Sequence record: OR805294.1
Length of the DNA stretch: 64,000 bases
Reading direction: 5' to 3' (one strand)
In this document: positions 28 to 13,188 of the stretch, one piece after another
Position numbering within the stretch: the first letter of the stretch is position 1
Layout: every line of letters starts with the position of its first letter
Program-made: the position numbers and the translations under genes
Notes under the pieces: generated by a model
Databases searched by the model: none
What the model was told of the DNA's origin: nothing
The model's input: the letters and a program-made list of their open reading frames with translations, nothing else

Positions 28-1596
28 ATGGCAGCAGAAGATTATTTAATTAAAAAGGCTTTTAAAAAGGTCTTATACACAGACAAACAGATAGAAGAAT
101 TAAAAAAATGCATGGATCCTATAAATGGTCCTATGTATTTTATGACAAATTTTGTCTACATTCAGCATCCTACAAAAGGTCGTCTGTTATTTAAACCGTT
201 TCCATATCAAGTAGGTTTATTAGAAGCATTTCACAATTATAGATATTCTATAGCTATGCTAGGAAGGCAGCTAGGTAAATCTACTGTAGCTGGATCTTAT
301 TTACTATGGTACGCAATGTTCGTACCTGATAGTTTTATTTTAGTTGCATCGAAAACAGGCGGCGACGCCAAAGAGATCATGGGTCGAATTAGGTTTGCAT
401 ATGAAAGTTTGCCAGATCATATTAGGGCAGGTGCAATTACTTATAATAAACACAGTATAGAATTTGATAACGGATCTAAGATTAAATCAACTACTACTAC
501 CGAAAATACAGGTAGGGGAATGTCTATTTCGCTAGTATATTTAGATGAAATGGCATTCGTGCCGTACAATGTGGCTATAGAAATGTGGACTTCTCTATCA
601 CCTACATTATCCACTGGCGGTAAATGTATAATAACTTCTACGCCTAATACCGACGAGGATTTGTTTGCCGATATATGGCATAATGCAAACAAATTAACTG
701 ACGAATACGGAAATGAACGAAAAATAGGTGCTAATGGATTTAAGCCGTTTAAAGCTACTTGGAAAGATCATCCTGACAGAGATGAAAATTGGGCAACAAT
801 AGAACGTGAAAAGATAGGGGAAGAAAGATTTCGTAGAGAACACGAAGTGGAGTTTATTTCTTTTGAAGAAACTCTTATAAATTCTATAAAATTAAATCAA
901 TTAGAATCTAAAACTCCTATAAGAAAAACAGGCCAAGTCCGTTGGTATGAAGAAATAAAGCCGACAAATACATATGTTGTTGGATTAGATCCATCTATGG
1001 GAGCCGGCGGCGACAATGCTGCAATACAAGTGTTAGAATTACCTACAATGAAACAAGTAGCTGAGTGGCAGCACAACAGAACACCAGTCGAAGGTCAAGT
1101 TAGGCTGTTAAATGAAATACTTACAGAAATACAAAACGCAGGTGTAGTAGAATTATATTGGTCGTTGGAATCTAATAATTTAGGAGAAGCTGCATTAGTA
1201 GTAATACGTGATACAGGAGAAGAATATTTTCCTGGGACATTTTTGCATGATCCTGTAAAACAAGCAGGGGCGAATAGTCGTAAAAGACAAGGTTTTCTTA
1301 CTACTAATCGGACAAAAATAGAAGCATGTTCTAGATTGAAATCCTTAATAGAAAATAATAAAATAAAAATATCATCTTCTGCATTGATTAGTGAATTAAA
1401 GAATTATGTACACAGAGGAGCCACGTTTGAAGCTCGACCAGGAACTACAGACGATTTGGTGTCTGCACTTATATTAACACTAAGGATGACTCAGTTTATT
1501 GCATTATGGGATGATAATACAAATGGTGCAATCAGTGCAAGTATAGAAGTTGTCGATGAGGATGATGATAGTATGCCTATGCCTTTCTTATTTTAA
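28..1596 (+). CDS. terL: Terminase large subunit (T4 gp17-like)
   Basis: Walker A LGRQLGKST, Walker B YLDEMAF, ITSTPN, nuclease motifs GLDPS and TDDLV. The frame is open from base 1; ATG 28 is the preferred start. Confidence 0.95.
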   Translation: MAAEDYLIKKAFKKVLYTDKQIEELKKCMDPINGPMYFMTNFVYIQHPTKGRLLFKPFPYQVGLLEAFHNYRYSIAMLGRQLGKSTVAGSYLLWYAMFVPDSFILVASKTGGDAKEIMGRIRFAYESLPDHIRAGAITYNKHSIEFDNGSKIKSTTTTENTGRGMSISLVYLDEMAFVPYNVAIEMWTSLSPTLSTGGKCIITSTPNTDEDLFADIWHNANKLTDEYGNERKIGANGFKPFKATWKDHPDRDENWATIEREKIGEERFRREHEVEFISFEETLINSIKLNQLESKTPIRKTGQVRWYEEIKPTNTYVVGLDPSMGAGGDNAAIQVLELPTMKQVAEWQHNRTPVEGQVRLLNEILTEIQNAGVVELYWSLESNNLGEAALVVIRDTGEEYFPGTFLHDPVKQAGANSRKRQGFLTTNRTKIEACSRLKSLIENNKIKISSSALISELKNYVHRGATFEARPGTTDDLVSALILTLRMTQFIALWDDNTNGAISASIEVVDEDDDSMPMPFLF

Positions 1597-1627
1597 ACTA
1601 AATATAATTAAATTGGATTTAGATTTA

Positions 1628-3118
1628 ATGAAACTATTTGAAGTCTTTACTTTATATGAAGATAAAGCAGAACTGATTGTGAAAAATCAGGGACCCAAAC
1701 TCCTTACTGCTGCTAAAAATTATGGATCGAATATTCGTACGGCTGAAGAAATAATGAATGTTCTTAAGAGTGCAGATCCCACATCTGATCAGAAATACTT
1801 GCAGTGGATTACTAATAGATTTATTGCAGGTGAATTTAGATTAGAAGATACTAATAGAATAAGGGCAGATCTTATATCATTCGAGAGATATAAACGTGTT
1901 TTACCGAAAAAAGATATAAATCAGTATAAAACACTAGGAGAATTGTATGCAGTAATTGACCCATTAAATGACGCAGCAACAGGCAACGATCTGATCGGTG
2001 TATCTAATAAACAAGTTAAAAAGCATGCATATAATGCCAAACGCCAAGAATTAATTTCGTCTGGTCAGGCAGATGTAATTTATAAAGGCCAAGAAGGAAT
2101 GCTAGTTAATCCCAAAACAGAAGATGCAGCAATATTCTTTGGTCAAGGAACTAGGTGGTGTACCGCAGCAACTAGTAGTGATAATATGTTTAGTCACTAC
2201 CATAGTCAGGGACCGTTATATACTTGGTTAGGTTCTGATGGATTCAAAGCACAATTCCATTTAGAAACTAATCAATGGATGGATTCAAAAGACGAGCCTT
2301 TAGACAACGATCAAATGTCTAAGCTATTGTCAATTCCTATAATTAAAAAATTGTACGACGACGGTATAATTAAATCTGAGAAATCGCTTGTCGGAGATCG
2401 CGGCGGCTTCGATGACGAATATGATAATAGACTATCGGATGACTATTATTTCGACATGTGGGCTGATCGAAAATACCGTATCAAACGACATATTGAGAAA
2501 CACGGCATGTCTGAGTATTTAATAGATACACTTTCTGTTAAAGATCCTTTATTACCGTTGTTTGTTTTACCAGAATACTCAAAATACCCTGCGTCGAAAT
2601 CACTCGATGATTATTTTTTAAAATTATCCAAATTAGAACCGCTTGACCAATATAAAGAGATAAATGGGTATTTTGAAAGTGATATGTTACTTCGATTAAC
2701 TAGATACCTTGAAGATTCTACAGGGTCTCATTCTAAATCTTTAGATGATGCTGGATTTAATTTTGTTCGTCGATTACTGGACATAGGCGGAAAGGATTTT
2801 GATTTAATAATATCGAACTATCTAAAACATGTAGCTGAGAATTCTAAAACAAAACAATACCTTCTGTCTAATCTTCCGTTAGCTGTTGAGATTGCTAATT
2901 CGATTGAATGGCCGGAACTTATGACAGCAATTGAGCATGAGCTTAGCAATGCTAAAACACCAAAAGAAGAGAACGATGCAATAAAACTAGGCAGTGAGTT
3001 AATGTTTAAATCTAATAGCCTGCCTGTATCTAAATGGTTTATTAATTTACTTAAAACTACAGATGCAGGTAAACGATACTTATCATCATTACCTGAGTAT
3101 GACAACACAAAACAATAA
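1628..3118 (+). CDS. Hypothetical protein with GTRWCTA (PcfJ-like) motif, probable late/head protein
   Basis: Long ORF. The track start at 1550 overlaps terL; ATG 1628 follows CTAAATA at 1598. Confidence 0.6.
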   Translation: MKLFEVFTLYEDKAELIVKNQGPKLLTAAKNYGSNIRTAEEIMNVLKSADPTSDQKYLQWITNRFIAGEFRLEDTNRIRADLISFERYKRVLPKKDINQYKTLGELYAVIDPLNDAATGNDLIGVSNKQVKKHAYNAKRQELISSGQADVIYKGQEGMLVNPKTEDAAIFFGQGTRWCTAATSSDNMFSHYHSQGPLYTWLGSDGFKAQFHLETNQWMDSKDEPLDNDQMSKLLSIPIIKKLYDDGIIKSEKSLVGDRGGFDDEYDNRLSDDYYFDMWADRKYRIKRHIEKHGMSEYLIDTLSVKDPLLPLFVLPEYSKYPASKSLDDYFLKLSKLEPLDQYKEINGYFESDMLLRLTRYLEDSTGSHSKSLDDAGFNFVRRLLDIGGKDFDLIISNYLKHVAENSKTKQYLLSNLPLAVEIANSIEWPELMTAIEHELSNAKTPKEENDAIKLGSELMFKSNSLPVSKWFINLLKTTDAGKRYLSSLPEYDNTKQ

Positions 3119-3146: not shown

Positions 3147-4637
3147 TTGATTAATTATAACAGAACTGCTAAAAAAATATTTTCTGTATTAAAAGGGCAC
3201 AGCTATCGGGTAAAAATGTATGACCTAACAGGCAATGAAGTGATAGACCCGGAAAAAGCTCGTCGATTTTATGTTCAATATCCGAACATGATGATAACAC
3301 TAGATGAAGACACTGGTGAAATTCGTATGAGCAAAAACAATAATATTTCTTTAACTGAATACGAAAGCACATTAGTTCAGTTAAAGAACATAGCAGTGCA
3401 TTACATGCTAAATTTTACCTTGAAAGACTTCGGGAGAGAAATAACACCGAGGGATTTTGCATACCAAGCAAAAGTTAAAAAGGAAAAAGAAATGTCTAAC
3501 GGATCTGTATCTGAATCTATATCTCCTCTAGCTGGTTCTAGAAAAACAAGTTATCAAACAATAGAAAATGTTAAAATACATGTAAAGCATAAGACACATG
3601 TCGACGAAGAGATTAGGGGAGCTCGTTCTAGAAATATTTCTGCAATTTTTATAGAACACTCGGGAGAAAGGTTTCGTTTTCCTCACAATAATTTAGTTGG
3701 TGCCCGCGCCATGGCAAGACATATACAGCAAGGCGGTAATCAATACGATTCGATCGGTTCTTATATAATAGAAAGCTGTGCTAACTATACTAAGTTAAGA
3801 GAATTTATGAGATATATTCGTTCTAATAATCTTATAACAGAAGATAGCAACGATGTTATTGTTAATATTAAGGAAAGTATAGATAGTATAGCTACAGATT
3901 TAAAACGTCTATCCGGTGTAAATACTTACGGTATAGTAAAATCTAGGATCGAAGAAACGGAAGAAACAGAATGCGATGTATCTGATGTAGATAAGTTTAA
4001 GGATATGTTTACTATTCGTAAGTTTGACGATAAGTTTACTGATGTTCTTCCTATAGTGAGTAAACTCGTTAAGGAAAAACAATCATATTTAAAGAAAATA
4101 GAAGAAGCAGTTTCTAAACAAATTTATATAGAGTCTATGCCTATTTTAGAAACTAATGCTATAATATATGAAAATCCTAATATTAAGTTAGGACATAGCT
4201 TACAAGAACTTAGTTCTAGAATATTAGAAAATACATTATTAGCTAATTATATTTCGTCGATGGGATCTAAGCTAATAAAAGAAAATACTTTAAATAAATT
4301 CGAATGTTCTATAATCAAATCATTTTTTGAAAACGTTAGTGTTAAAAAAGCAAATACTAATCAAACTAATGGGTTATTTGCAGAATCGATCAACGAATTT
4401 GGAATAAATATTCCTGACTTCCCGGATAATAACCCCTTTAATAAAAATAAAGACAACAAATACAGTAATTCAGATTTAGATAAACACGCATCTGATCAAA
4501 AAGTAGATGCAAATGACACTGTCTCTAAAATTGATTTTATTATAAGCAATAGCCACGGAAGATATAATGACAGAGAAAAATTACTAAAATTGCCAGATGA
4601 TGTTATTAACAGAATATATTCCAAAATTGCTAAATAA
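3147..4637 (+). CDS. Conserved hypothetical phage protein
   Basis: 496-aa ORF, TTG start with SD GAGGT, AATAAATA at 3114. Confidence 0.7.
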   Translation: MINYNRTAKKIFSVLKGHSYRVKMYDLTGNEVIDPEKARRFYVQYPNMMITLDEDTGEIRMSKNNNISLTEYESTLVQLKNIAVHYMLNFTLKDFGREITPRDFAYQAKVKKEKEMSNGSVSESISPLAGSRKTSYQTIENVKIHVKHKTHVDEEIRGARSRNISAIFIEHSGERFRFPHNNLVGARAMARHIQQGGNQYDSIGSYIIESCANYTKLREFMRYIRSNNLITEDSNDVIVNIKESIDSIATDLKRLSGVNTYGIVKSRIEETEETECDVSDVDKFKDMFTIRKFDDKFTDVLPIVSKLVKEKQSYLKKIEEAVSKQIYIESMPILETNAIIYENPNIKLGHSLQELSSRILENTLLANYISSMGSKLIKENTLNKFECSIIKSFFENVSVKKANTNQTNGLFAESINEFGINIPDFPDNNPFNKNKDNKYSNSDLDKHASDQKVDANDTVSKIDFIISNSHGRYNDREKLLKLPDDVINRIYSKIAK

Positions 4638-4717
4638 AATTATTATCAAGATCATTGAACTGGATTCGAAATAAAATTAATTCTGTATACTTTGCATATT
4701 ACACTAAAAATAAATGG

Positions 4718-4746
4718 TTGACAAATAGATAACTGCATTATATAAT
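4718..4746 (+). promoter_or_regulatory. Consensus sigma70 promoter of ssb
   Basis: TTGACA-17 bp-TATAAT. Confidence 0.9.
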
Positions 4747-4759
4747 TACACCATAACTT

Positions 4760-4803
4760 AGTTTTGCAGCTAACCCGAGCAAAACTGTATTAAAAGGGTT
4801 TAG
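4760..4803 (+). promoter_or_regulatory. Candidate H-type RNA pseudoknot in ssb leader
   Basis: Stem AGTTTTGC/GCAAAACT; loop AACCC (4772-4776) complementary to GGGTT (4796-4800). Confidence 0.5.
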
Positions 4804-4835
4804 GATAAAATAAAAAATATTAAGGATAATTCATT

Positions 4836-5822
4836 ATGGCTTCTCTTGCTGAACTACGTCAAAAATTAAAAGATCAAGAAACAAAACGTGGCACAAAATC
4901 ATCTGGCAGTGCAGATAAAAGTAATTTCCCATTCTGGGACATGAATGAAAACGACAGTGCTACTGTAAGATTTCTTCCTGATGCAAACACTGATAATACC
5001 TTTTTCTGGGTAGAAAAACAACAAATTAAAATTCCATTTAGTGGCATTGTAGGTATGAATAGTAAACCTACAGTTGTTACTGTACCGTGTGTAGAAATGT
5101 GGGGGGAATCTTGCCCTATTCATCAAGAAATCCGTCCATGGTTTAAAGATCCTTCGTTAGAGAAATTGGCGCGTACTTATTGGAAGAAACGTTCTTATAT
5201 TTTCCAAGGACTTGTACGTAAGTCACCTCTTGTAGAACAAGAACTACCAGAGAATCCTATTCGCAAATTTACATTCGGAAGTCAGATTTTTAATCTAGTT
5301 AAATCGTCTCTATTAGACCCCGAAATGGAAAACATTCCCACTGATTATTTAAATGGTACTGATTTCCAGATAACTAAATTAATGAAGGGCCAATATGCCG
5401 ATTACGCTACATCTAAATGGGCAAGGAAAGAATCTTCGTTAACTGAAGAAGAATTCCAGGCAATCCAAACATATGGTCTGTATGATTTAAGTAAATTTTT
5501 ACCTGCTAAACCTGATGCAGAAGCATTAGCTGCTATATTCGAGATGTTCGAAGAATCAGTAGAAGGTAAAGAATATGATCCGCAGCGTTGGGGGAAATAC
5601 TATCGCCCGTACGGGGTTGAAGTTCCTACTAATACTTCCGTGAGTGTACCTGTATCTAAGCCAGAACCTAAGACTACGGTATCTAGTTCTTCAGTTATAG
5701 AAGACGATAACGATGATCTTCCTTGGGAAGATACTACTAAACCTGTAGAGCCTGCCAAATCTGCTTCTAATGCGCAAGATATAATTGCGCTCATCCGCGC
5801 CCGCCAAAACAGCGGCAACTAA
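4836..5822 (+). CDS. Single-stranded DNA-binding protein (T4 gp32-like)
   Basis: Position before uvsX, VRFLP motif, C/H/C cluster PCVEMWGESCPIH, acidic low-complexity C-terminus. Confidence 0.85.
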   Translation: MASLAELRQKLKDQETKRGTKSSGSADKSNFPFWDMNENDSATVRFLPDANTDNTFFWVEKQQIKIPFSGIVGMNSKPTVVTVPCVEMWGESCPIHQEIRPWFKDPSLEKLARTYWKKRSYIFQGLVRKSPLVEQELPENPIRKFTFGSQIFNLVKSSLLDPEMENIPTDYLNGTDFQITKLMKGQYADYATSKWARKESSLTEEEFQAIQTYGLYDLSKFLPAKPDAEALAAIFEMFEESVEGKEYDPQRWGKYYRPYGVEVPTNTSVSVPVSKPEPKTTVSSSSVIEDDNDDLPWEDTTKPVEPAKSASNAQDIIALIRARQNSGN

Positions 5823-5826
5823 ATAG

Positions 5827-5855
5827 AGAGAGGGGATCGCTGATCCCCTCTCTTT
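5827..5855 (+). terminator. Intrinsic terminator after ssb
   Basis: 12-bp stem AGAGAGGGGATC/GATCCCCTCTCT, 3-nt loop, short T run. Confidence 0.7.
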
Positions 5856-5928
5856 AATATAACCTAAAATAGCCAAAAAGTACAACTACAATGTTGGAAG
5901 GACGGCAGTATTATAAAAAGGACATTTT

Positions 5929-6174
5929 ATGACAAAACCATTCGATATTTCTAAATTTAGAAAAGATATTACCAAAAGTATCACTGGCATTAGTACAGGA
6001 TTTAATGACCCAACTATTTGGATTAGTACCGGCAACTATACTCTTAATTATCTCATTAGTAGCGACTTTAATAAAGGCGTACCTATGGGTAAAGTAACTA
6101 TGTTTGCTGGCGAGTCGGGTTGTTTGCCTGAAACTGCTAAAGTGAAAATTAGACTATCTAAGAAGCAATCTTAA
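5929..6174 (+). CDS. uvsX: UvsX/RecA-like recombinase N-terminal fragment (64 aa) fused to a 17-aa N-intein
   Basis: WISTGNYTLNYLIS...GVPMGKVTMFAGESG is a RecA N-terminus ending inside Walker A, followed by CLPETAKVKIRLSKKQS-stop. Confidence 0.92.
   Translation: MTKPFDISKFRKDITKSITGISTGFNDPTIWISTGNYTLNYLISSDFNKGVPMGKVTMFAGESGCLPETAKVKIRLSKKQS
6121..6171 (+). mobile_element. Split intein N-fragment (IntN, 17 aa)
   Basis: Block A Cys1-Leu-Pro starting directly after GESG, stop after 17 codons. Confidence 0.88.
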
Positions 6175-6183
6175 CTGTCCAGT

Positions 6184-6223
6184 GTCTCCGTCGAGGATAA
6201 ATACTTTTATCTAAAACGGAGAC
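6184..6223 (+). promoter_or_regulatory. RBS-sequestering hairpin with embedded late promoter upstream of the endonuclease gene
   Basis: Outer stem GTCTCCGT/ACGGAGAC covers SD GGAGA; inner stem GATAAA/TTTATC; GATAAATA at 6196-6203. Confidence 0.7.
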
Positions 6224-6226
6224 TTT

Positions 6227-7660
6227 ATGGGAAATTACAATGTTCTTTCTACAAAAAACTTTAAGAAGCTATGTAATGAGTTAAACATAGTAACGATATC
6301 AGAAAAGTACATTTCTGATATACGTAAGATAGAAGATTCTGCTAAGAGCAAAGTGGATTCTGCATCTCAGCGTATGATATTAACTATGATAACTGTGAAA
6401 GTTCCCGACTTATATGATGCATATAACAGATACTATCAGCTCAGAACAGATGGTATTAGTACAAAAACTCAAGACAGTATTTCTTATATTTTTGGAAAAG
6501 ACTTCCTCGAATCTGTTAATTTACTAATCAGTAATAGATATAAAACTGCATTCCGTAAAGGAATGACAGTGGAAGAGACATTTATAACACGTAATAAAGA
6601 CTTTTCCAATAATGGTGTGTATTATAACCAGATGACTGATAAGCAAAAGAAACGTTTATCATTATTGCTTAGTGTGTATACACCAGAAAGGTTGGAGTTT
6701 TATAAAAAGACAATTTCGTTTTTTATTAAGTTAGATTTGACTAATTATGCAGGAAGAATGAAAAGACTGATGAAACTGGGATCTAGTACGTCTTTATATG
6801 CTAGCGTATTACGGTATGGTAAATCTGTCGGAAAAAGCACACATTCATCTGTATCTGCGGTAAAGAGAAACTATTTGCCTACTTCGATACAATATTGGAT
6901 GGCAAAGGGGTTTGATGAAGATACTGCATTAGTGAAGATAAACGAACATCAACAGAAAGCAAGTGCCATGTCTTCCAAAAAACTAAAAGGCACTAGCGAA
7001 TACTCTGTTCGATCAGTTGCATATTGGATTAAAAACGGGTATAGCGAAGAAGAGGCAAAAGGGAAAGTATCTAATATACAGAATACTTGGAAAAATGTAT
7101 CTCAAGAAGAGCGTGATCGAAGAATAGAATCGTGGATGACTACAATGAGTCTTAAAACAGACGAGGAGAAATCTTTGATAAACCTTAAAAAAACTCACAG
7201 CCCGGAAGGGATAATGGCAAGGACAAATTGCGATTATGATATTGCATTTAAGCAAAGCGTTGATTTTTTTAAGAAACGAAATAATTCTTCTAAAGTATCT
7301 CAAGAACTATTTTGGGGAATTGCCGAGGATATCGATACCGATGGAGTTTACTTTTCTGAACTAAACTACGAATACCCTGTTATGGGGAAAATAGTAGATT
7401 TCTATGATTCTAAAAGCAAAACAGTAATCGAATTTTATGGAAACTTTTGGCATGCAGATAGTACATATACTGATGACACACTGATATATGGAAAAACTGC
7501 TAAAGAAATAAGAGAATCGGACATTTACAGAGAAACGTTAATTAGATCATCTGATTTGGTTAGTGATTTTATAGTAGTTTGGGAAAAGGACTTTAGGAAG
7601 AATCCGAAAGAAACAATTAAAAATTTAGTTAATATTTTAAATAATAAAAGGAAATTTTAA
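6227..7660 (+). mobile_element. Free-standing putative homing endonuclease, Vsr-like PD-(D/E)xK, between the intein halves
   Basis: C-terminal VDFYD...VIEFYGNFWHAD...VVWEKDF; two YWxxxG(F/Y)xE(D/E)xA repeats. Confidence 0.8.
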
Positions 7661-7663
7661 TAA

Positions 7664-8047
7664 ATGGAATACATCGAAAAGGAAGTAACAGTTAGTGAAC
7701 TGAAGTCTCTCTACAGTAGTAATGAATACGAAATTGAGTTAGACACACCAGATGGCTGGCAAAAACTGGGATCTTGGTTCGATAAAGGCCCTCTTAGTAT
7801 GGTGACGGTAGAAACGCAGGATGGGTTAGTTACTAGATGTGCAGTAAACCATATGATCGAAGTGGTAGACGGATCGGAAACTTTTTGGACACTTGCAAAA
7901 GACTTGTACGAAGGCCAACAAGTGCTTACTGTAAACGGTGTCTCAACAATTAGTTCTGTAACTGAAAGTGGCATCGAAGAATGTTTCGATTTCGAAATAC
8001 TCCACGAAAATCATCGTTACTATGGTGATGGATTCTCTTCTCACAAT
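7664..8047 (+). mobile_element. Split intein C-fragment (IntC, 128 aa)
   Basis: TPDG, block B-like CAVNH, block F CFDFEI, terminal His-Asn followed by Ser+1. Confidence 0.9.
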
Positions 8048-8935
8048 AGTGGCAAATCGTATATAGTATCAGGAAACATTGTAAAAGATGCACAAGAAAA
8101 GGGAATTTTTGTTGTATTACTTGATTCAGAAAATGCACTCGACGAATCTTGGCTACATGCACTAGGTGTAGACACTGGACCGGAAAAAATGTTACGCATC
8201 TCTGTATCGATGATAGATGATGTAGCAAAAATTATTAGTGATTTTGTTAAAGATTACAAGACTAATTATGCCGAACTACCTAACAATGATCGACCAAAGG
8301 TGCTTTTTGTTATTGACTCGCTCGGAATGTTATTGACACCAACGGAAACTGCACAATTTCAAAATGGTGATATGAAAGGAGATATGGGCAGGAAAGCAAA
8401 ACAATTAAAAGCATTGATTTCTAACTGTACAAATATGTTCGGCAACTTAGACATAGGCCTTGTTTGTACTAACCATACATATGCATCTCAAGATTTATTT
8501 CAGCCCGACGCTGTAATTTCGGGTGGCAGCGGCGCAGTCTATGCCGCGTCAATTGTAGTGGCAATGCAAAAGTTAAAGTTAAAAGAAGACGAAGCAGGTA
8601 ATAAAATTTCTGAAGTAGCTGGTATTCGTGCAGTATGTAAAGTTGTGAAATCTCGATATGCAAAGCCGTTTGAGACAGTAAAAGTAAATATTCCATATGA
8701 TACAGGTATGAGTCCGATATCGGGTCTATTTGACTTGTTTGAAAAAACAGGTAAACTTGTAAAACAAGGCAATAGATACAAGTACATAACCAAAGATGGT
8801 ACCGAAATGCTGTATTATAGGAAAGAATGGAATGATTACGATAAACTAAAAGTAATTATGAATGAATTTACAGACGAAGACCTAGGCAATGTCGTAGAAG
8901 TGGAAGAGGGTCATTTAGAAGAGTTCGATGAATAA
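7664..8935 (+). CDS. uvsX: C-intein (128 aa) fused to UvsX/RecA C-terminal fragment (295 aa)
   Basis: After SHN the sequence resumes SGKS (rest of Walker A), then LDSENALD, Walker B VIDSLG, CTNHTY, SGG, KSRY. Confidence 0.93.
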   Translation: MEYIEKEVTVSELKSLYSSNEYEIELDTPDGWQKLGSWFDKGPLSMVTVETQDGLVTRCAVNHMIEVVDGSETFWTLAKDLYEGQQVLTVNGVSTISSVTESGIEECFDFEILHENHRYYGDGFSSHNSGKSYIVSGNIVKDAQEKGIFVVLLDSENALDESWLHALGVDTGPEKMLRISVSMIDDVAKIISDFVKDYKTNYAELPNNDRPKVLFVIDSLGMLLTPTETAQFQNGDMKGDMGRKAKQLKALISNCTNMFGNLDIGLVCTNHTYASQDLFQPDAVISGGSGAVYAASIVVAMQKLKLKEDEAGNKISEVAGIRAVCKVVKSRYAKPFETVKVNIPYDTGMSPISGLFDLFEKTGKLVKQGNRYKYITKDGTEMLYYRKEWNDYDKLKVIMNEFTDEDLGNVVEVEEGHLEEFDE

Positions 8936-10763
8936 ATTATGCGAAACAGATCGTATTAATATTATCAAATTACACTTCGATGATTTAAAATCTGTATCTG
9001 AATTAAAGAAAATATATGGAGTCTCTTATGATGTCATTAAAACCATCATAAGAGATGAAACGAATCGTCTGCCGTTGCAAGAAACTGATATAAAAATTTT
9101 GAAATTTAAAAAACTTGTTTCAAAGGAGTTGTTATTTGAATTACATGTAATTAAAAAACAATCATTTAATGAAATAAGAAAAACTTATAAGATTAATGAA
9201 CTTCATTTAAAACAAGTGTTTAATGATTACGGAATACCAATTGAAAAGTGTTTATATACTGCTACTAACAAGAAGCGTAAAACAAAAAAGCCTGAAGATT
9301 TTACTAAAGACTTTTTCGAACACTTAGTATATAACGAAAGACGAACAATTAGTTGGATAAAAAATAATTATAACTTTAATTTTGAAGAACTAAAACATCA
9401 TTTAACACATTTAAAAATCGATTATACTAATTCGTTGCCACCTGCTGTAAAACATCAACAAGATAAAATATCTAGAGAAACTCTAGCAGAAGAATTAAAA
9501 ATTAAATCTATTGTTGATATAATAAATGAATACGGAATTTCTAGAACTTATGTAGAAAGCGTTATAAAAGAATACAATATACAGTATTTTACAAAACCGA
9601 AACATTCTATATTAAGTGGTAAAGAATCAGAAATTTATCGGATGTATTATGATGAATGTATGACTACATACCAAATAGCAGAAAAATTGGGAGTATGTCA
9701 ATACACCATATGGAAAATAATGGCAGATAACGGATGGAAAACACGAGAACCGATTAAAAAAATTGATTTGATTTGGAATGATATAAAAGAAGAAGTTGTT
9801 AAATTAATAGACAACGGTTATACATTATCTGCTTTATGTGAAAAATACGAAATAACATCTATTACTGAAAAGTTAATAGAAGAAGGTATAAAATATACAA
9901 AGGGAAATATTTCTTCTGGTCATGCAGAAATATCTGAATATGTGCGTTCATTGGGATTTAATGTAATCGACAATGATCGTACTATTATATTTCCGCGAGA
10001 AATTGATATTTTTATTCCCGAACTTAACATAGGAATAGAATACAACGGATTATATTTTCATAGCACACGAACAGAAGGAAATGTAACAAAGCATAGAGAA
10101 AAATATAGCATATGTAAACAAAAAGGTATTCGTTTAATACAAATTTTTGAAGATGAATTTATTCATAAGAAAGAACTAGTAAAGAGAAAATTAGCGCACA
10201 TTTTAGGAAAATCTAATAATAAATGTTATGCAAGGAATTGTATAGTTAAAGAAATATCGGTAGCAGACAAACGAAATTTCTTTAAAAAATATCACATACA
10301 AGAAGATTCTGCATCCTCGTATGCATATGGATTATATTATGATAATGAATTAGTTTGTGCTATGTCTTTTCTTAAAAAGAAGAAATGTACAGAACTAGTT
10401 AGATATGCATCTTCTATGCACGTGATCGGCGGATTTTCTAAGTTGTTGAAATATTGTATTAATAATAACAAAATAGATGTTATAAACACATATGCTGATC
10501 TCAGATGGTCGAATCCGACAAATAATGTATATGTAAACAATGGGTTTGATATACTGTATGAGACTGATTTTAATTACACTTATGTGAGTAAAGAGGATTT
10601 TTCAAAAAGGCTTAATAGGCAAAAATTTATGAAACACAAGTTGAAAAACATTTTATCAGATTTCGACAAATCATTAACAGAAGAAGAGAATATGAAAAAT
10701 AATGGATTTTATCGAGTATACGATGCTGGCCATTTAAAATTGCAATATAAGGTTAATAAATGA
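8928..10763 (+). mobile_element. Hef-like free-standing putative homing endonuclease with N-terminal helical repeats
   Basis: EIDIFIPELNIGIEYNGLYFHS...IRLIQIFEDE nuclease motif followed by YARNC...ELVRYAS...YADLRWS...YDAG domain. Confidence 0.75.
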
Positions 10764-10960
10764 TTACAGATGTTGAAGCAATAAATGAAATTTGGGCTGC
10801 CGTGCGACCATATATTAAGTCATCTGAGCGCATTCATGCAGCGGATGCGTTTATAGAAGTTTTAGATGAATACGGAATGCTTGATGTAGATATTCAAATG
10901 TTTGAAAAAGAACTTAAAATAGCAGCAAAAACACATTTAGGTGAAGCAGATGACGACTAA
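10760..10960 (+). CDS. Small hypothetical protein
   Basis: 66-aa ORF coupled to neighbours. Confidence 0.6.
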   Translation: MITDVEAINEIWAAVRPYIKSSERIHAADAFIEVLDEYGMLDVDIQMFEKELKIAAKTHLGEADDD

Positions 10961-11276
10961 TTTAGAATTTAGTGACGAATTTCTATCAACTGTATCGTCG
11001 TTGAAAGCCAATATAACATCCAAAAATAAAGATGCTGTCATAGAACAATTAGACAAATTGTTAGATATGGTAACAAAAGATATGAATGCGGTTATATGGG
11101 TAATACAACCTGAAAATATTAATAACCTACATATACTATGTTCTGATTCATTTAATATTCCTATTAGTCAATTTAGACTAAAACGAAGAATACCGTCAAA
11201 ATCTCAACGAGCTCATTTATTTTTAAAAGTAATTAGGATTGCACTTGCTGGAAAAGAAAATGAACAATTGGTATAA
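10941..11276 (+). CDS. Hypothetical protein
   Basis: 111-aa ORF in operon. Confidence 0.55.
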   Translation: MKQMTTNLEFSDEFLSTVSSLKANITSKNKDAVIEQLDKLLDMVTKDMNAVIWVIQPENINNLHILCSDSFNIPISQFRLKRRIPSKSQRAHLFLKVIRIALAGKENEQLV

Positions 11277-11724
11277 CATTGTCTATGCAGATTTATCTAA
11301 GATACCTGATTTCATTTCTTTTTTTGAAAAAGAAATAGATATTTCTAAGTCTACAGAAATGTCTTTAAAGGGTAAAACGTTAGAGAAACATTGCGCAGAG
11401 TTGCCGGGTATAGTAGAGAATAGATTTGCACAGCTTCAAGAAATTGAAGCTGTACTAGAATTACTTAATATTCAGTATAAACAAGAAAAAAGCGACAGAT
11501 TCAAATTTTATCTACAGCAGTTTCCTAAAGCACTTTCTTCTAGGGATGCAGAGAAATATGCAGAAGGAGATCCACTTGTAGTAAACAGGGCAATATTAGT
11601 TAATGAAGTTGCATTGCTAAGAAACAAATATCTTTCGCTAATGAAGGGTTTAGATTCTAAGAATTGGATGGTAGGCCACATAGTTAAACTTCGTTGTGCA
11701 GGACTAGACGACGCACAAATTTAA
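11260..11724 (+). CDS. uvsY: Recombination mediator UvsY-like protein
   Basis: Helical protein with LSSRDAEKYAEGD and KGLDSKNW motifs, between uvsX and uvsW; ATG 11260 preferred. Confidence 0.7.
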   Translation: MNNWYNIVYADLSKIPDFISFFEKEIDISKSTEMSLKGKTLEKHCAELPGIVENRFAQLQEIEAVLELLNIQYKQEKSDRFKFYLQQFPKALSSRDAEKYAEGDPLVVNRAILVNEVALLRNKYLSLMKGLDSKNWMVGHIVKLRCAGLDDAQI

Positions 11725-11736
11725 ATAGGATTCGTA

Positions 11737-13188
11737 ATGGCAAAGGATTGCAAATTAGTAATAAAAGATGAAGTAAATATTGCATTTACTGGACTTGATA
11801 TAAACACTCGTAGAAAACTATCTGATTCGTTAAAATTCTTTTTACCTCATGCAAGACACCAACCTGCATACAAGTTAGGTAGATGGGATGGATGTATTAG
11901 ATATTGTGATATAGCCGGACGTTCGTATCTTAATTTTTTAGATATACTTATTCCTATTGTAGAAAATAGTGGTTATTATATAACCATAGAAGATAATAGA
12001 CAACCGTTTTCGTGTAATTTTGAACCAATAGATGCTAACTCATATTCTCATATTACTTGGCCTGTAGGACATCAATATGAAGGGCAGAATATTGTTCTAC
12101 GGGATTATCAAGTAGAGGCAGTGAATAATTACTTAGCTAATACACAGAGTATAGCAACATTGCCTACTGGTTTTGGAAAAACATTAGTTACTGCTGCATT
12201 AGCACATAAAGTAGAAAAGTATGGAAGAACAATAACAATTGTTCCATCTAAAGACTTAGTTACCCAAACGGAACGGGATTTTAAAAACTTCGGATTAGAT
12301 ACTGGCGTTTATTTCGGAGATAGAAAAGAATTAGGCAAAACCCACACTATAGTTACCTGGCAAAGTATTGAAGCTATTTATAAACAAAGTAAAGCAGACG
12401 AAAATGCATTGACATTAGAAAAATTCATTGAAGGGGTAGTAGCAGTAGTAGTCGATGAAGCACATACCATTAAGGGTCAATCATTAAAAGAACATTTAAC
12501 TTCTACATTTGCTAATGTTCCTATTCGATGGGCTATGACAGGAACCATACCGGAAGAGGAACATGCCGCCGCCGCCCTCATTGCATGCATAGGTCCTGTT
12601 ACAAAAACTGTGAAAGCAAAAGAATTGCAAGAAGCAGGAATACTTAGTGAGTTGCATATAGAAGTCCTACAATTAAACGATTATCATACTTCACATCCGA
12701 ACTATGCAGCCGAATTAAAATTTCTTACTACAGACCCTACTCGTTTAAAATGGCTAGCCGAACATATAAAATCTCAAGAAGGTAATACGTTAGTGTTAGT
12801 TGATAGGCTGTCAAGCGGAGAAGAACTTCTTAAGCATATACCAGATGCTGCTTTTGTTAAAGGTGATTTAAAAAGTAAAGACAGAAGAACTGAATATAAA
12901 TCAGTTACATCAGATACAGATAAAATTATTATAGCAACCTTTGGGGTTGCATCTACTGGTATTGATATACCATACATACATAATGTATATTTATTAGAAC
13001 CAGGAAAGTCTTTTATTAGGGTAATTCAGTCTATCGGTCGCGGTCTACGCAAGGCACCCGGAAAAGACTATGTATCTGTATTTGATATTACTTCTGTTGC
13101 AAAATATTCTGCAAGGCATTTAACTAAAAGGAAAAAATTCTATAAAGAAGCAGAATATCCATTTTCTGTGAAAAAAATAGATTATTAA
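11737..13188 (+). CDS. uvsW: UvsW-like SF2 DNA helicase
   Basis: LRDYQ, LPTGFGKT, VDEAH, MTGT, STGIDIP, QSIGRGLR. Confidence 0.92.
   Translation: MAKDCKLVIKDEVNIAFTGLDINTRRKLSDSLKFFLPHARHQPAYKLGRWDGCIRYCDIAGRSYLNFLDILIPIVENSGYYITIEDNRQPFSCNFEPIDANSYSHITWPVGHQYEGQNIVLRDYQVEAVNNYLANTQSIATLPTGFGKTLVTAALAHKVEKYGRTITIVPSKDLVTQTERDFKNFGLDTGVYFGDRKELGKTHTIVTWQSIEAIYKQSKADENALTLEKFIEGVVAVVVDEAHTIKGQSLKEHLTSTFANVPIRWAMTGTIPEEEHAAAALIACIGPVTKTVKAKELQEAGILSELHIEVLQLNDYHTSHPNYAAELKFLTTDPTRLKWLAEHIKSQEGNTLVLVDRLSSGEELLKHIPDAAFVKGDLKSKDRRTEYKSVTSDTDKIIIATFGVASTGIDIPYIHNVYLLEPGKSFIRVIQSIGRGLRKAPGKDYVSVFDITSVAKYSARHLTKRKKFYKEAEYPFSVKKIDY

Follow-up and report, generated by a model that had tools for sequence, protein, structure and literature searches.

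How does a phage obtain an intact recombinase from a uvsX gene that lies in two pieces? The question is raised by Ettore (OR805294.1), a 288-kb Pseudomonas phage isolated on P. aeruginosa PAO1, which is a PA5oct-like jumbo phage of the genus Wroclawvirus, family Arenbergviridae. In the window analysed here, the initial 64 kb of the Ettore genome, uvsX is present as two open reading frames (ORFs), an N piece of 81 amino acids (aa) at 5929-6174 and a 423-aa C piece at 7664-8935, with a 477-aa gene between them. The N piece consists of 64 extein residues and a 17-aa N-terminal intein part (IntN), and the C piece consists of a 128-aa C-terminal intein part (IntC) and 295 extein residues. We consider it very likely that Ettore uvsX is a fractured gene, in which a VidaL-type mini-intein in the Walker A loop has been split by a Vsr-like cassette and UvsX is made by trans-splicing. 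The order on the plus strand, 5929-6174, a spacer of 52 nucleotides (nt), 6227-7660 and 7664-8935, is that of the fractured genes of Dassa et al. (2009). The features of the locus are as follows.

5929..6120, plus strand: uvsX N-extein (64 codons, up to ...KVTMFAGESG), with the first half of Walker A
6121..6174, plus strand: IntN, 17 codons CLPETAKVKIRLSKKQS followed by TAA at 6172-6174; net charge +4
6184..6223, plus strand: RNA hairpin in the 52-nt spacer, from its folding energy, shuffled controls and equivalents in three metagenomic loci
6227..7660, plus strand: free-standing gene for a predicted Vsr-like homing endonuclease of 477 aa, from homologues and the Vsr profile alignment
7646..7663, plus strand: probable start region for translation of the C piece, AAAAGGAAA as read from the sequence
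7664..8047, plus strand: IntC, 128 codons, MEYIEKEVTV...HRYYGDGFSSHN; net charge -17
8048..8935, plus strand: uvsX C-extein, 295 codons from SGKSYIVSG, second half of Walker A, and the stop codon
6109..8152, no strand assigned: zone of near-zero variation among Wroclawvirus genomes, consisting of the cassette and of flanks of 12 nt (left) and 105 nt (right)

The two ORFs had been described in an earlier note, and both were confirmed. The 81-aa ORF ends ...FAGESG-CLPETAKVKIRLSKKQS before its TAA, and the 423-aa ORF has 128 residues, with HRYYGDGFSSHN at residues 117-128, before it continues as SGKSY. The note had also stated that removal of both intein parts gives a 359-aa UvsX with an intact P-loop. 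This was found to be correct (64 + 295 = 359 aa), and the sequence GESG/SGKS was restored at the junction. The Cys1 codon is at 6121-6123, the Asn128 codon at 8045-8047 and the Ser+1 codon at 8048-8050. The computed masses were 8.9 kDa for the N piece, 47.3 kDa for the C piece and ~39.8 kDa for the spliced 359-aa UvsX.

The N piece and the C piece were searched separately throughout. The N piece matched PHROG 97 'UvsX-like recombinase' (E=3e-13), and the C piece matched Pfam RecA (E=2e-10) and PHROG 97 (E=2e-46). When joined, the exteins form a RecA core with the Walker A motif GxxxxGK[ST], a feature of UvsX/RecA proteins. Escherichia phage phAPEC6 encodes an intein-less RecA-like protein (372 aa) at the same position, directly downstream of the gene for single-stranded DNA-binding protein (SSB), and its SSB-to-uvsX synteny agrees with that of Ettore. 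Residues 15-64 of the N piece were 66% identical to phAPEC6 residues 18-67, which end KVTMFAGESG, and residues 129-421 of the C piece were 56% identical to phAPEC6 residues 68-363, which start SGKSFIVSG. No residue was lost or duplicated at the junction (0 in either case), and the joined GESG/SGKS is identical to GESGSGKS of phAPEC6. The UvsX structure 9gbg gave the same junction, with residues 26-64 aligned to 26-64 and residues 129-368 aligned to 65-291.

The earlier note had allowed that an assembly artefact might account for the TAA at 6172 or for the two halves being apart. The probability of this, or of a sequencing artefact, is negligible. The split arrangement is identical in 11 Wroclawvirus database records, which stand for 10 phages because PA5oct was entered in both GenBank and RefSeq, and it is also present in unrelated metagenomic contigs. 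Over a 3.2-kb stretch that includes the locus, the Ettore record is 100% identical to the window at the same coordinates, and the ten others are 99.5-99.9% identical. Laboratories and years differ among the records, and at least four countries are represented (Switzerland, Spain, Japan and Thailand); the records of PA5oct and MIJ3 give no country.

The intein parts were then compared with known structures. IntC matched PDB entries 6vgv/6vgw, deposited as 'VidaL', at E=1.1e-35 over C-piece residues 5-131, and 63 of 120 aligned residues (52.5%) were identical. For IntN, ESG-CLPETAKVKIRLSKK aligned with ESG-ALPKEAVVQIRLTKK of 6vgv, with 10/15 residues identical; we assume that the Ala at the Cys1 position of 6vgv was introduced into the crystal construct on purpose (C1A). 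When 24 residues with IntN at their end were searched against the whole PDB, 6vgv was the sole match, and a weak one (E=1.6). The likeness to VidaL, which the earlier note had pointed out, was borne out by these alignments. The native exteins of VidaL are ESG and SGK, and therefore the insertion site is common to VidaL and the Ettore intein. From these exteins we take the VidaL host gene to be uvsX; VidaL comes from an Antarctic lake metagenome. VidaL is used for protein labelling and protein editing. It is a fast, natural, cysteine-dependent split intein with an S1 split, a 16-aa IntN and a half-time of ~1 min (PMC13014065). The Ettore intein is split at the equivalent position: IntN aligned to 6vgv residues 4-18 and IntC from residue 23, and both VidaL and the Ettore intein have their break past the first beta-hairpin (S1). 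The two parts, encoded in separate ORFs, have the sizes of an atypical split (IntN 17 aa, IntC 128 aa).

The residues of the splicing chemistry are in place. Cys1, the position-1 nucleophile, follows GESG directly, and IntN fits the pattern CLPxxAxVxIR of 63 metagenomic N halves. The tails of these N halves and 36 contiguous relatives all start with Cys, but they were selected by a Cys-after-GxxG pattern and are not an independent test of conservation. Block B of IntC reads C59-A60-x-N62-H63, in which H63 is kept in 100% of 98 family sequences, and T57 is 97% conserved. Block F reads C107-x-D109-F110...H117-R118-Y119, and block G reads S126-H127-N128, followed by Ser129; D109, F110, H117, R118, Y119, S126-H127-N128 and Ser129 are each at least 98% conserved in the family. 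Across the 31 columns with at least 90% conservation among the 98 members, Ettore has the majority residue at 30, the exception being E66, which is usually Gln. Residues kept at conserved columns include T57, C59, A60, N62, H63, C107, D109, F110, H114, N116-Y119, G121-G123 and S126-H127-N128. The opposite charges of IntN (+4) and IntC (-17) fit an electrostatic capture of the short basic peptide.

A conserved intein could still belong to a gene that is broken and stays unrepaired at the protein level, so that uvsX would be either a dead remnant or a non-covalent two-subunit recombinase with the intein remnants as a dimerisation handle (compare the intein-less split nrdA of phage Aeh1). Genes that are split by an endonuclease and work without splicing are known (discussed in PMC2677866). 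We aligned ten Wroclawvirus genomes over 5800-9000. The exteins had 31 variable sites in 1080 nt (N-extein 11, C-extein 20), which formed ten haplotypes and were all synonymous; the ten genomes encode one N-piece protein and one C-piece protein. Both extein halves are under strong purifying selection. With 31 synonymous and 0 non-synonymous differences, uvsX is therefore not dead. All catalytic intein residues are also kept and invariant, the closest characterised relative, VidaL, splices, and an unexcised insert of 145 residues would interrupt the GxxxxGKS phosphate-binding loop. We regard an unrepaired uvsX as improbable. The split-intein reading of the earlier note is supported by the homology to VidaL, the exact collinearity of the exteins and the fact that none of the residues invariant in the 99 family members has been lost; its statement that the protein must be made by trans-splicing was too strong, and trans-splicing is what we infer.

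What split the intein? The earlier note had passed over the 477-aa gene between the halves. Its homologues were 37-42% identical, and two of them are named 'very short patch repair' endonuclease by their sources. Three homologues are located between a uvsX N piece (~80 aa) and a C piece (~420-430 aa) in the unrelated metagenomic contigs L005, L016 and L017. When an 18-member family profile was aligned with E. coli Vsr by hhalign, the match had E=5.6e-5 and a probability of 66%. In this alignment D391/H409/D432 fell on the catalytic D51/H69/D97 of Vsr, F407-W408 on the intercalating F67-W68, and E402 on F62. D391, E402, G405 and H409 are invariant in the endonuclease family, and D432 is at least 90% conserved. 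Pfam DUF559 and MTES_1575 matched 4/18 and 7/18 family members, respectively, at ~3e-5, but not the Ettore protein itself, and a profile search of the PDB found Vsr at E=1.2-1.7. The Vsr link is visible only with the family profile. The nuclease domain comprises residues ~370-477, where the AlphaFold pLDDT is >90. By probability, the top Foldseek matches were Vsr 1cw0 (0.84, TM 0.52) and the DUF559 protein 3hrl (0.84, TM 0.67), both with E ~2. By E-value, the best Foldseek matches of the full-length 477-aa model were unrelated helical proteins, none of them significant. The homologues and the profile alignment indicate that the gene product is a Vsr-like homing endonuclease of predicted activity, with weaker support from the fold, and its invasion is the probable cause of the intein split in uvsX.

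Residues 1-370 of the endonuclease (6227-7330) are all-helical and contain repeated modules resembling YW-x-K-G-[YF]-S-E-E-E-A-K, for example IQYWMAKGFDEDTA and VAYWIKNGYSEEEAK. The modules are kept across the endonuclease family and have no Pfam match. This region is probably a modular DNA-binding array.

The spacer upstream of the endonuclease gene folds into a hairpin, whose outer stem pairs 6184-6191 with 6216-6223 and whose inner stem pairs 6195-6201 with 6206-6212. The minimum free energy was -22.8 kcal/mol (z = -4.3), and 0/200 shuffles folded as well. The GGAG ribosome-binding site of the endonuclease gene (6218-6221) lies in the 3' arm of the hairpin, 6 nt before the ATG, and GATAAATA at 6196-6203, in the hairpin interior, resembles a T4-type late-promoter box. 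Three unrelated metagenomic loci have equivalent hairpins in this position, built from other stem sequences (z = -4.9 to -5.3); the ribosome-binding site is again in the 3' arm, and two of them have an exact TATAAATA. In fractured genes and for the Aeh1 nrdA endonuclease, read-through transcripts leave the endonuclease untranslated and transcripts that start within the hairpin release it (PMC2677866). By analogy, translation of the Ettore endonuclease may also be controlled by its hairpin. At the other end of the gene, the ribosome-binding region AAAAGGAAA of the C piece lies inside the final endonuclease codons and is followed by TAA TAA and then the ATG at 7664. In the model of PMC2677866, the invading element supplies start signals for the downstream half of the gene, and AAAAGGAAA as the probable start signal of the C piece agrees with this model. 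A scan of 4600-11000 found no terminator-like site on the plus strand, and a terminator between the uvsX halves was rejected (0 plus-strand sites). In the GenBank record of PA5oct, the C-piece gene is labelled 'structural protein, ESI-MS/MS', as is the SSB gene, a label that is missing from the N piece and the endonuclease. From the mass spectrometry label it is clear that the C-piece gene is translated, but the label fits spliced and unspliced protein alike.

The arrangement of start signals also bears on a different route to an intact protein, in which the 1.5-kb insert would be removed as an endonuclease-carrying group I intron and a contiguous mini-intein would then splice in cis. Vsr-like endonuclease ORFs are indeed reported from recA genes of Bacillus and of phages, where they lie in group I introns (PMC2677866). 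However, a covariance search with E up to 10 found no group I intron or other Rfam family in 5700-9100, and a group I intron was rejected (0 Rfam families). The non-coding sequence amounts to just 52 + 3 nt, and the C piece has its own ATG after two stop codons, with AAGGA nearby. In addition, the start point is shared by dozens of homologues, in which a similar lead-in of 3-5 residues precedes EKEVTV (for example MNYIEKEV, MSYIEKEV), as would be expected of independently translated proteins. We judge removal at the RNA level to be very unlikely.

We propose the following course of events for a uvsX that is repaired by trans-splicing. A mini-intein would have resided between Gly64 and Ser65 of mature UvsX, and a mobile cassette would have invaded the variable loop 3' of its first beta-hairpin. 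The cassette would comprise the endonuclease gene, the hairpin that hides its ribosome-binding site and a new downstream start region. Two polypeptides would then be made, one of 8.9 kDa (N-extein and basic IntN) and one of 47.3 kDa (acidic IntC and C-extein), which would associate, aided by their opposite charges, and fold into the intein. Cys1 would form a thioester, Ser+1 would attack it, and cyclisation of Asn128 would release the intein. The expected product is the 359-aa UvsX of ~39.8 kDa with an intact GESGSGKS P-loop and the tryptic junction peptide VTMFAGESGSGK; this UvsX would act with its gp32-like, UvsY-like and UvsW-like neighbours. Alleles of uvsX that have no cassette would be cut by the endonuclease, and repair would copy the cassette in. 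Within the Wroclawvirus population the cassette appears to have spread recently.

The variation among the ten aligned genomes was used to examine the history of the cassette. From IntN to IntC there were 2 variable sites in 1927 nt, both non-synonymous and both in the endonuclease gene, and IntN and IntC had 0. Compared with the 31 sites in 1080 nt of the exteins, the difference was significant (Fisher p=2.8e-12). In neighbouring genes, 1.5-3 variable sites per 100 nt (~2.3) were counted over 14.6 kb in six genomes, and in the cassette 0.1 (p=7e-15). These data indicate a much younger common ancestor for the cassette than for its flanks, which differ by 2-3%; recent lateral spread through homing, with short co-conversion tracts, is the simplest explanation. 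The same pattern could come from recombination or a selective sweep unrelated to the endonuclease, or from an unusually strong constraint at the DNA level. Every sequenced genome has the cassette and no donor-recipient pair has been observed, and the non-synonymous nature of both endonuclease changes might hint at relaxed constraint. On the other hand, even synonymous sites are invariant over 640 codons, the low-variation zone consists of the cassette and short flanks, as co-conversion tracts predict, and the adjacent second endonuclease gene (8928-10763) varies normally, with 30 sites in 1836 nt. A cause other than homing is therefore somewhat doubtful in our view, though by no means far-fetched.

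To place the Ettore intein in its family, a word-indexed search with IntC was done, which found 103 relatives. Sixty-two of them start with Met and then IntC, as the Ettore C piece does, and 36 are contiguous UvsX proteins with a mini-intein of 133-158 aa at the same Gly/Cys...Asn/Ser site. The contiguous forms run CLPxxAxVxVR, then a loop of very variable length, the sole such loop, and then xVTVxELK; the break in the Ettore intein falls in this loop. The N-piece search found the 63 metagenomic N halves with IntN tails. The tails were 15 aa in 28 cases, 16 aa in 12, 17 aa in nine, 18 aa in five and longer in nine, and 17 aa is therefore an ordinary length for the family. What the earlier note said of a short IntN holds to the extent that the split is atypical with a 17-aa IntN; within the family this is not unusually short (VidaL 16 aa, commonest 15 aa). 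Since 28/63 tails are 15 aa long, natural partners shorter than the 16 aa of VidaL exist. For the cysteine-less PolB16 intein, 15 aa is given as 'record-short', the same as this commonest natural length (sequences within P0128-P0239).

A scan of 1.84 billion cluster representatives gave 381 matches at E<=0.001 and 78 at E<=1e-10. Among 50,697 phage records, relatives with >35% identity were limited to three groups, namely the 11 Wroclawvirus records, Salicola phage SCTP-2 (52%, contiguous, with a second intein) and one uncultured phage; Wroclawvirus is therefore the sole cultured carrier of the split form in that collection. A scan of viral contigs with IntC found two loci only, both with contiguous inteins. 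In a tree of the inteins (120 columns, 99 rows), split and contiguous forms were interspersed; parsimony required 19 changes, and the well-supported branches force at least 3. The Ettore intein fell outside the well-supported group of 19 sequences that contains VidaL. From the variation and the tree together, we tentatively propose, at a little short of even confidence, that the cassette is a currently active homing element that recently swept the PA5oct-like phages across several countries, and that invasion of the S1 loop recurrently splits contiguous uvsX mini-inteins.

Some uvsX genes carry, besides a contiguous VidaL-type intein, a second intein downstream at ...ISGG/C (L007 4758-6844; L022 2743-4713; P0084). 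Of these second inteins, those of Salicola phage SCTP-2 and P0084 are contiguous, and that of L007 is apparently split. The 196-kb metagenomic contig L005, which has a fractured uvsX, also codes at 1-1153, immediately following a GIY-YIG-like gene, for the C-terminal part of a terminase, in which a faint match to inteins was seen; it is possibly a further fractured gene of the atypical terminase type.

Several observations weigh against the account given above. Splicing, cutting and homing are deduced for Ettore. The canonical Thr of block B (TxxH) is replaced by Ala (A60-V-N-H63), as it also is in VidaL (CAFNH). Pfam, PHROGs and a PDB sequence search do not recognise the 477-aa protein directly, and the Foldseek matches of its full-length model to Vsr are not significant (E ~2). 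The intein tree is poorly resolved, with 11 of its 94 inner branches well supported. All 11 sequenced Wroclawvirus records carry the cassette and no cassette-free allele is known in the genus; the sweep is therefore deduced from variation alone.

We compared the Ettore locus with known systems. It shares with VidaL the insertion point ESG/SGK, the Cys1/His-Asn/Ser+1 chemistry, the S1 split, the block B sequence CAxNH and the block F and G motifs. Unlike VidaL itself, to which its IntC is 52.5% and its IntN 10/15 identical, the Ettore intein has an IntN of 17 rather than 16 aa, lies outside the VidaL tree group and comes from cultured P. aeruginosa phages with complete genomes. The fractured genes described by Dassa et al. 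(2009; PMC2677866) consist of a split intein and of a free-standing Vsr-like or GIY-YIG endonuclease that lies between the two parts of the gene. Ettore resembles them in having three ORFs on one strand with a spacer of 52 nt (27-51 nt there), a hairpin that lies upstream of the ATG of the endonuclease and has a late-promoter-like TATAAATA element, a Vsr-like endonuclease with Glu at the position of Vsr Phe62, and a phage gene of DNA metabolism as its host. It differs in that uvsX is not among the eight host enzyme types listed there and those loci are metagenomic fragments; in addition, all of those inteins bar one (terminase) are split canonically, with a long IntN, whereas the Ettore intein is split near the N-terminus.

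The terminase inteins AceL-TerL, GOS-TerL and 'Cat' are likewise natural, cysteine-dependent and of phage origin, with a short IntN (25-37 aa) and a long IntC, but they have an S2 split, after the first helix, rather than the S1 split of Ettore. Terminase inteins of cultured phages (Vi01-like Salmonella phages and Vibrio phage Kuja) were ~31% identical to Ettore IntC, in a comparison that left out AceL and GOS. PolB16 OarG (PMC10189870) shares the S1 split and a very short IntN (15 aa); unlike Ettore, it is cysteine-less (Ser1), resides in PolB, comes from a sheep-gut metagenome and splices slowly. The split PolB intein of MIJ3 (PMC6892783) is from the same genus and also has an endonuclease gene between its halves, but the split is conventional (the N half holds blocks A, N2, B and N4), the endonuclease is of the HNH type and the gene is a different one. 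The PolB split intein of Wroclawvirus was looked for in the 64-kb window and was absent. The MIJ3 paper (PMC6892783) makes no mention of uvsX, RecA or a uvsX intein.

The recombination module around uvsX is T4-style. The gp32-like SSB gene is at 4836-5822 on the plus strand (Pfam gp32, E=2e-9), and further plus-strand ORFs encode a UvsY-like mediator (11260-11724, as named in the PAC2 record) and a UvsW/RadD-like helicase (11737-13188). A perfect sigma-70 consensus, TTGACA-17 nt-TATAAT, is present at 4718-4746 on the plus strand, ~90 nt 5' of the SSB gene, and is the sole 12/12 match in 4600-11000. Between the SSB gene and the N piece there is a GC-rich 12-bp palindrome with a 3-nt loop (5827-5853), which scored as terminator-like on the minus strand; isolates vary at 5827 and 5839-5841, within or beside the palindrome loop. 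Downstream, a second free-standing endonuclease gene of 611 aa (8928-10763, plus strand) starts 8 nt before the uvsX stop codon. Its product matched PHROG 3339 'homing endonuclease' (E=4e-95), with helix-turn-helix (HTH) domains and a weak match to the MTES_1575 nuclease. It is named 'Hef-like homing endonuclease' in the records of relatives and is absent from the syntenic phAPEC6 locus. A BLASTP comparison with the 477-aa protein showed only a weak resemblance in the nuclease motif (E=0.98), and a close kinship of the two endonuclease genes that flank the C piece was rejected on this result. The 8928-10763 gene varies normally, unlike the intein cassette; uvsX is therefore flanked by two independent endonuclease insertions. 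Elsewhere in the window, the plus-strand ORF 1565-3118, which has the large terminase gene on one side and the gene for a virion structural protein on the other, is hypervariable in six Wroclawvirus genomes, with 563 variable columns in 1554 nt (~36 per 100, compared with 2-3 per 100 in its vicinity). The ORF may mark a hot spot of diversity, or the gene may have been replaced.

Both the VidaL-type split intein and the fractured-gene arrangement are already established. The Ettore locus leaves what is known of the intein mechanism unchanged, and the family is common in metagenomes. To our knowledge, VidaL-type inteins have been known from metagenomic sequence. In the literature searched we found no earlier description of a uvsX intein in PA5oct-like phages, which does not prove that none exists. 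The sequence records examined name the 81-aa piece 'hypothetical protein', 'UvsX-like recombinase' or 'RecA-like protein', give the endonuclease as 'hypothetical protein', and have no intein among the listed features. What is new is that both features occur in the complete genomes of ten cultured phages that grow easily on a laboratory strain, where the full context is visible (SSB, the UvsY-like and UvsW-like module, the regulatory hairpin and the adjoining second endonuclease), together with a population signature of recent mobility in a culturable host-phage system.

VidaL-type inteins are valued for placing a tag of only ~16 residues on one partner. The earlier note had suggested a possible new ligation tool; what we have is a VidaL orthologue, an incremental addition rather than a new class. 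At 52% identity it may be orthogonal to VidaL, and it would then serve labelling with two inteins at once. In Wroclawvirus, splicing during infection, its possible role in limiting or timing recombinase activity and homing by the endonuclease are directly testable. If the cassette is indeed actively homing, Wroclawvirus on PAO1 would be the first culturable system for fractured-gene homing and for natural short-IntN trans-splicing in vivo.

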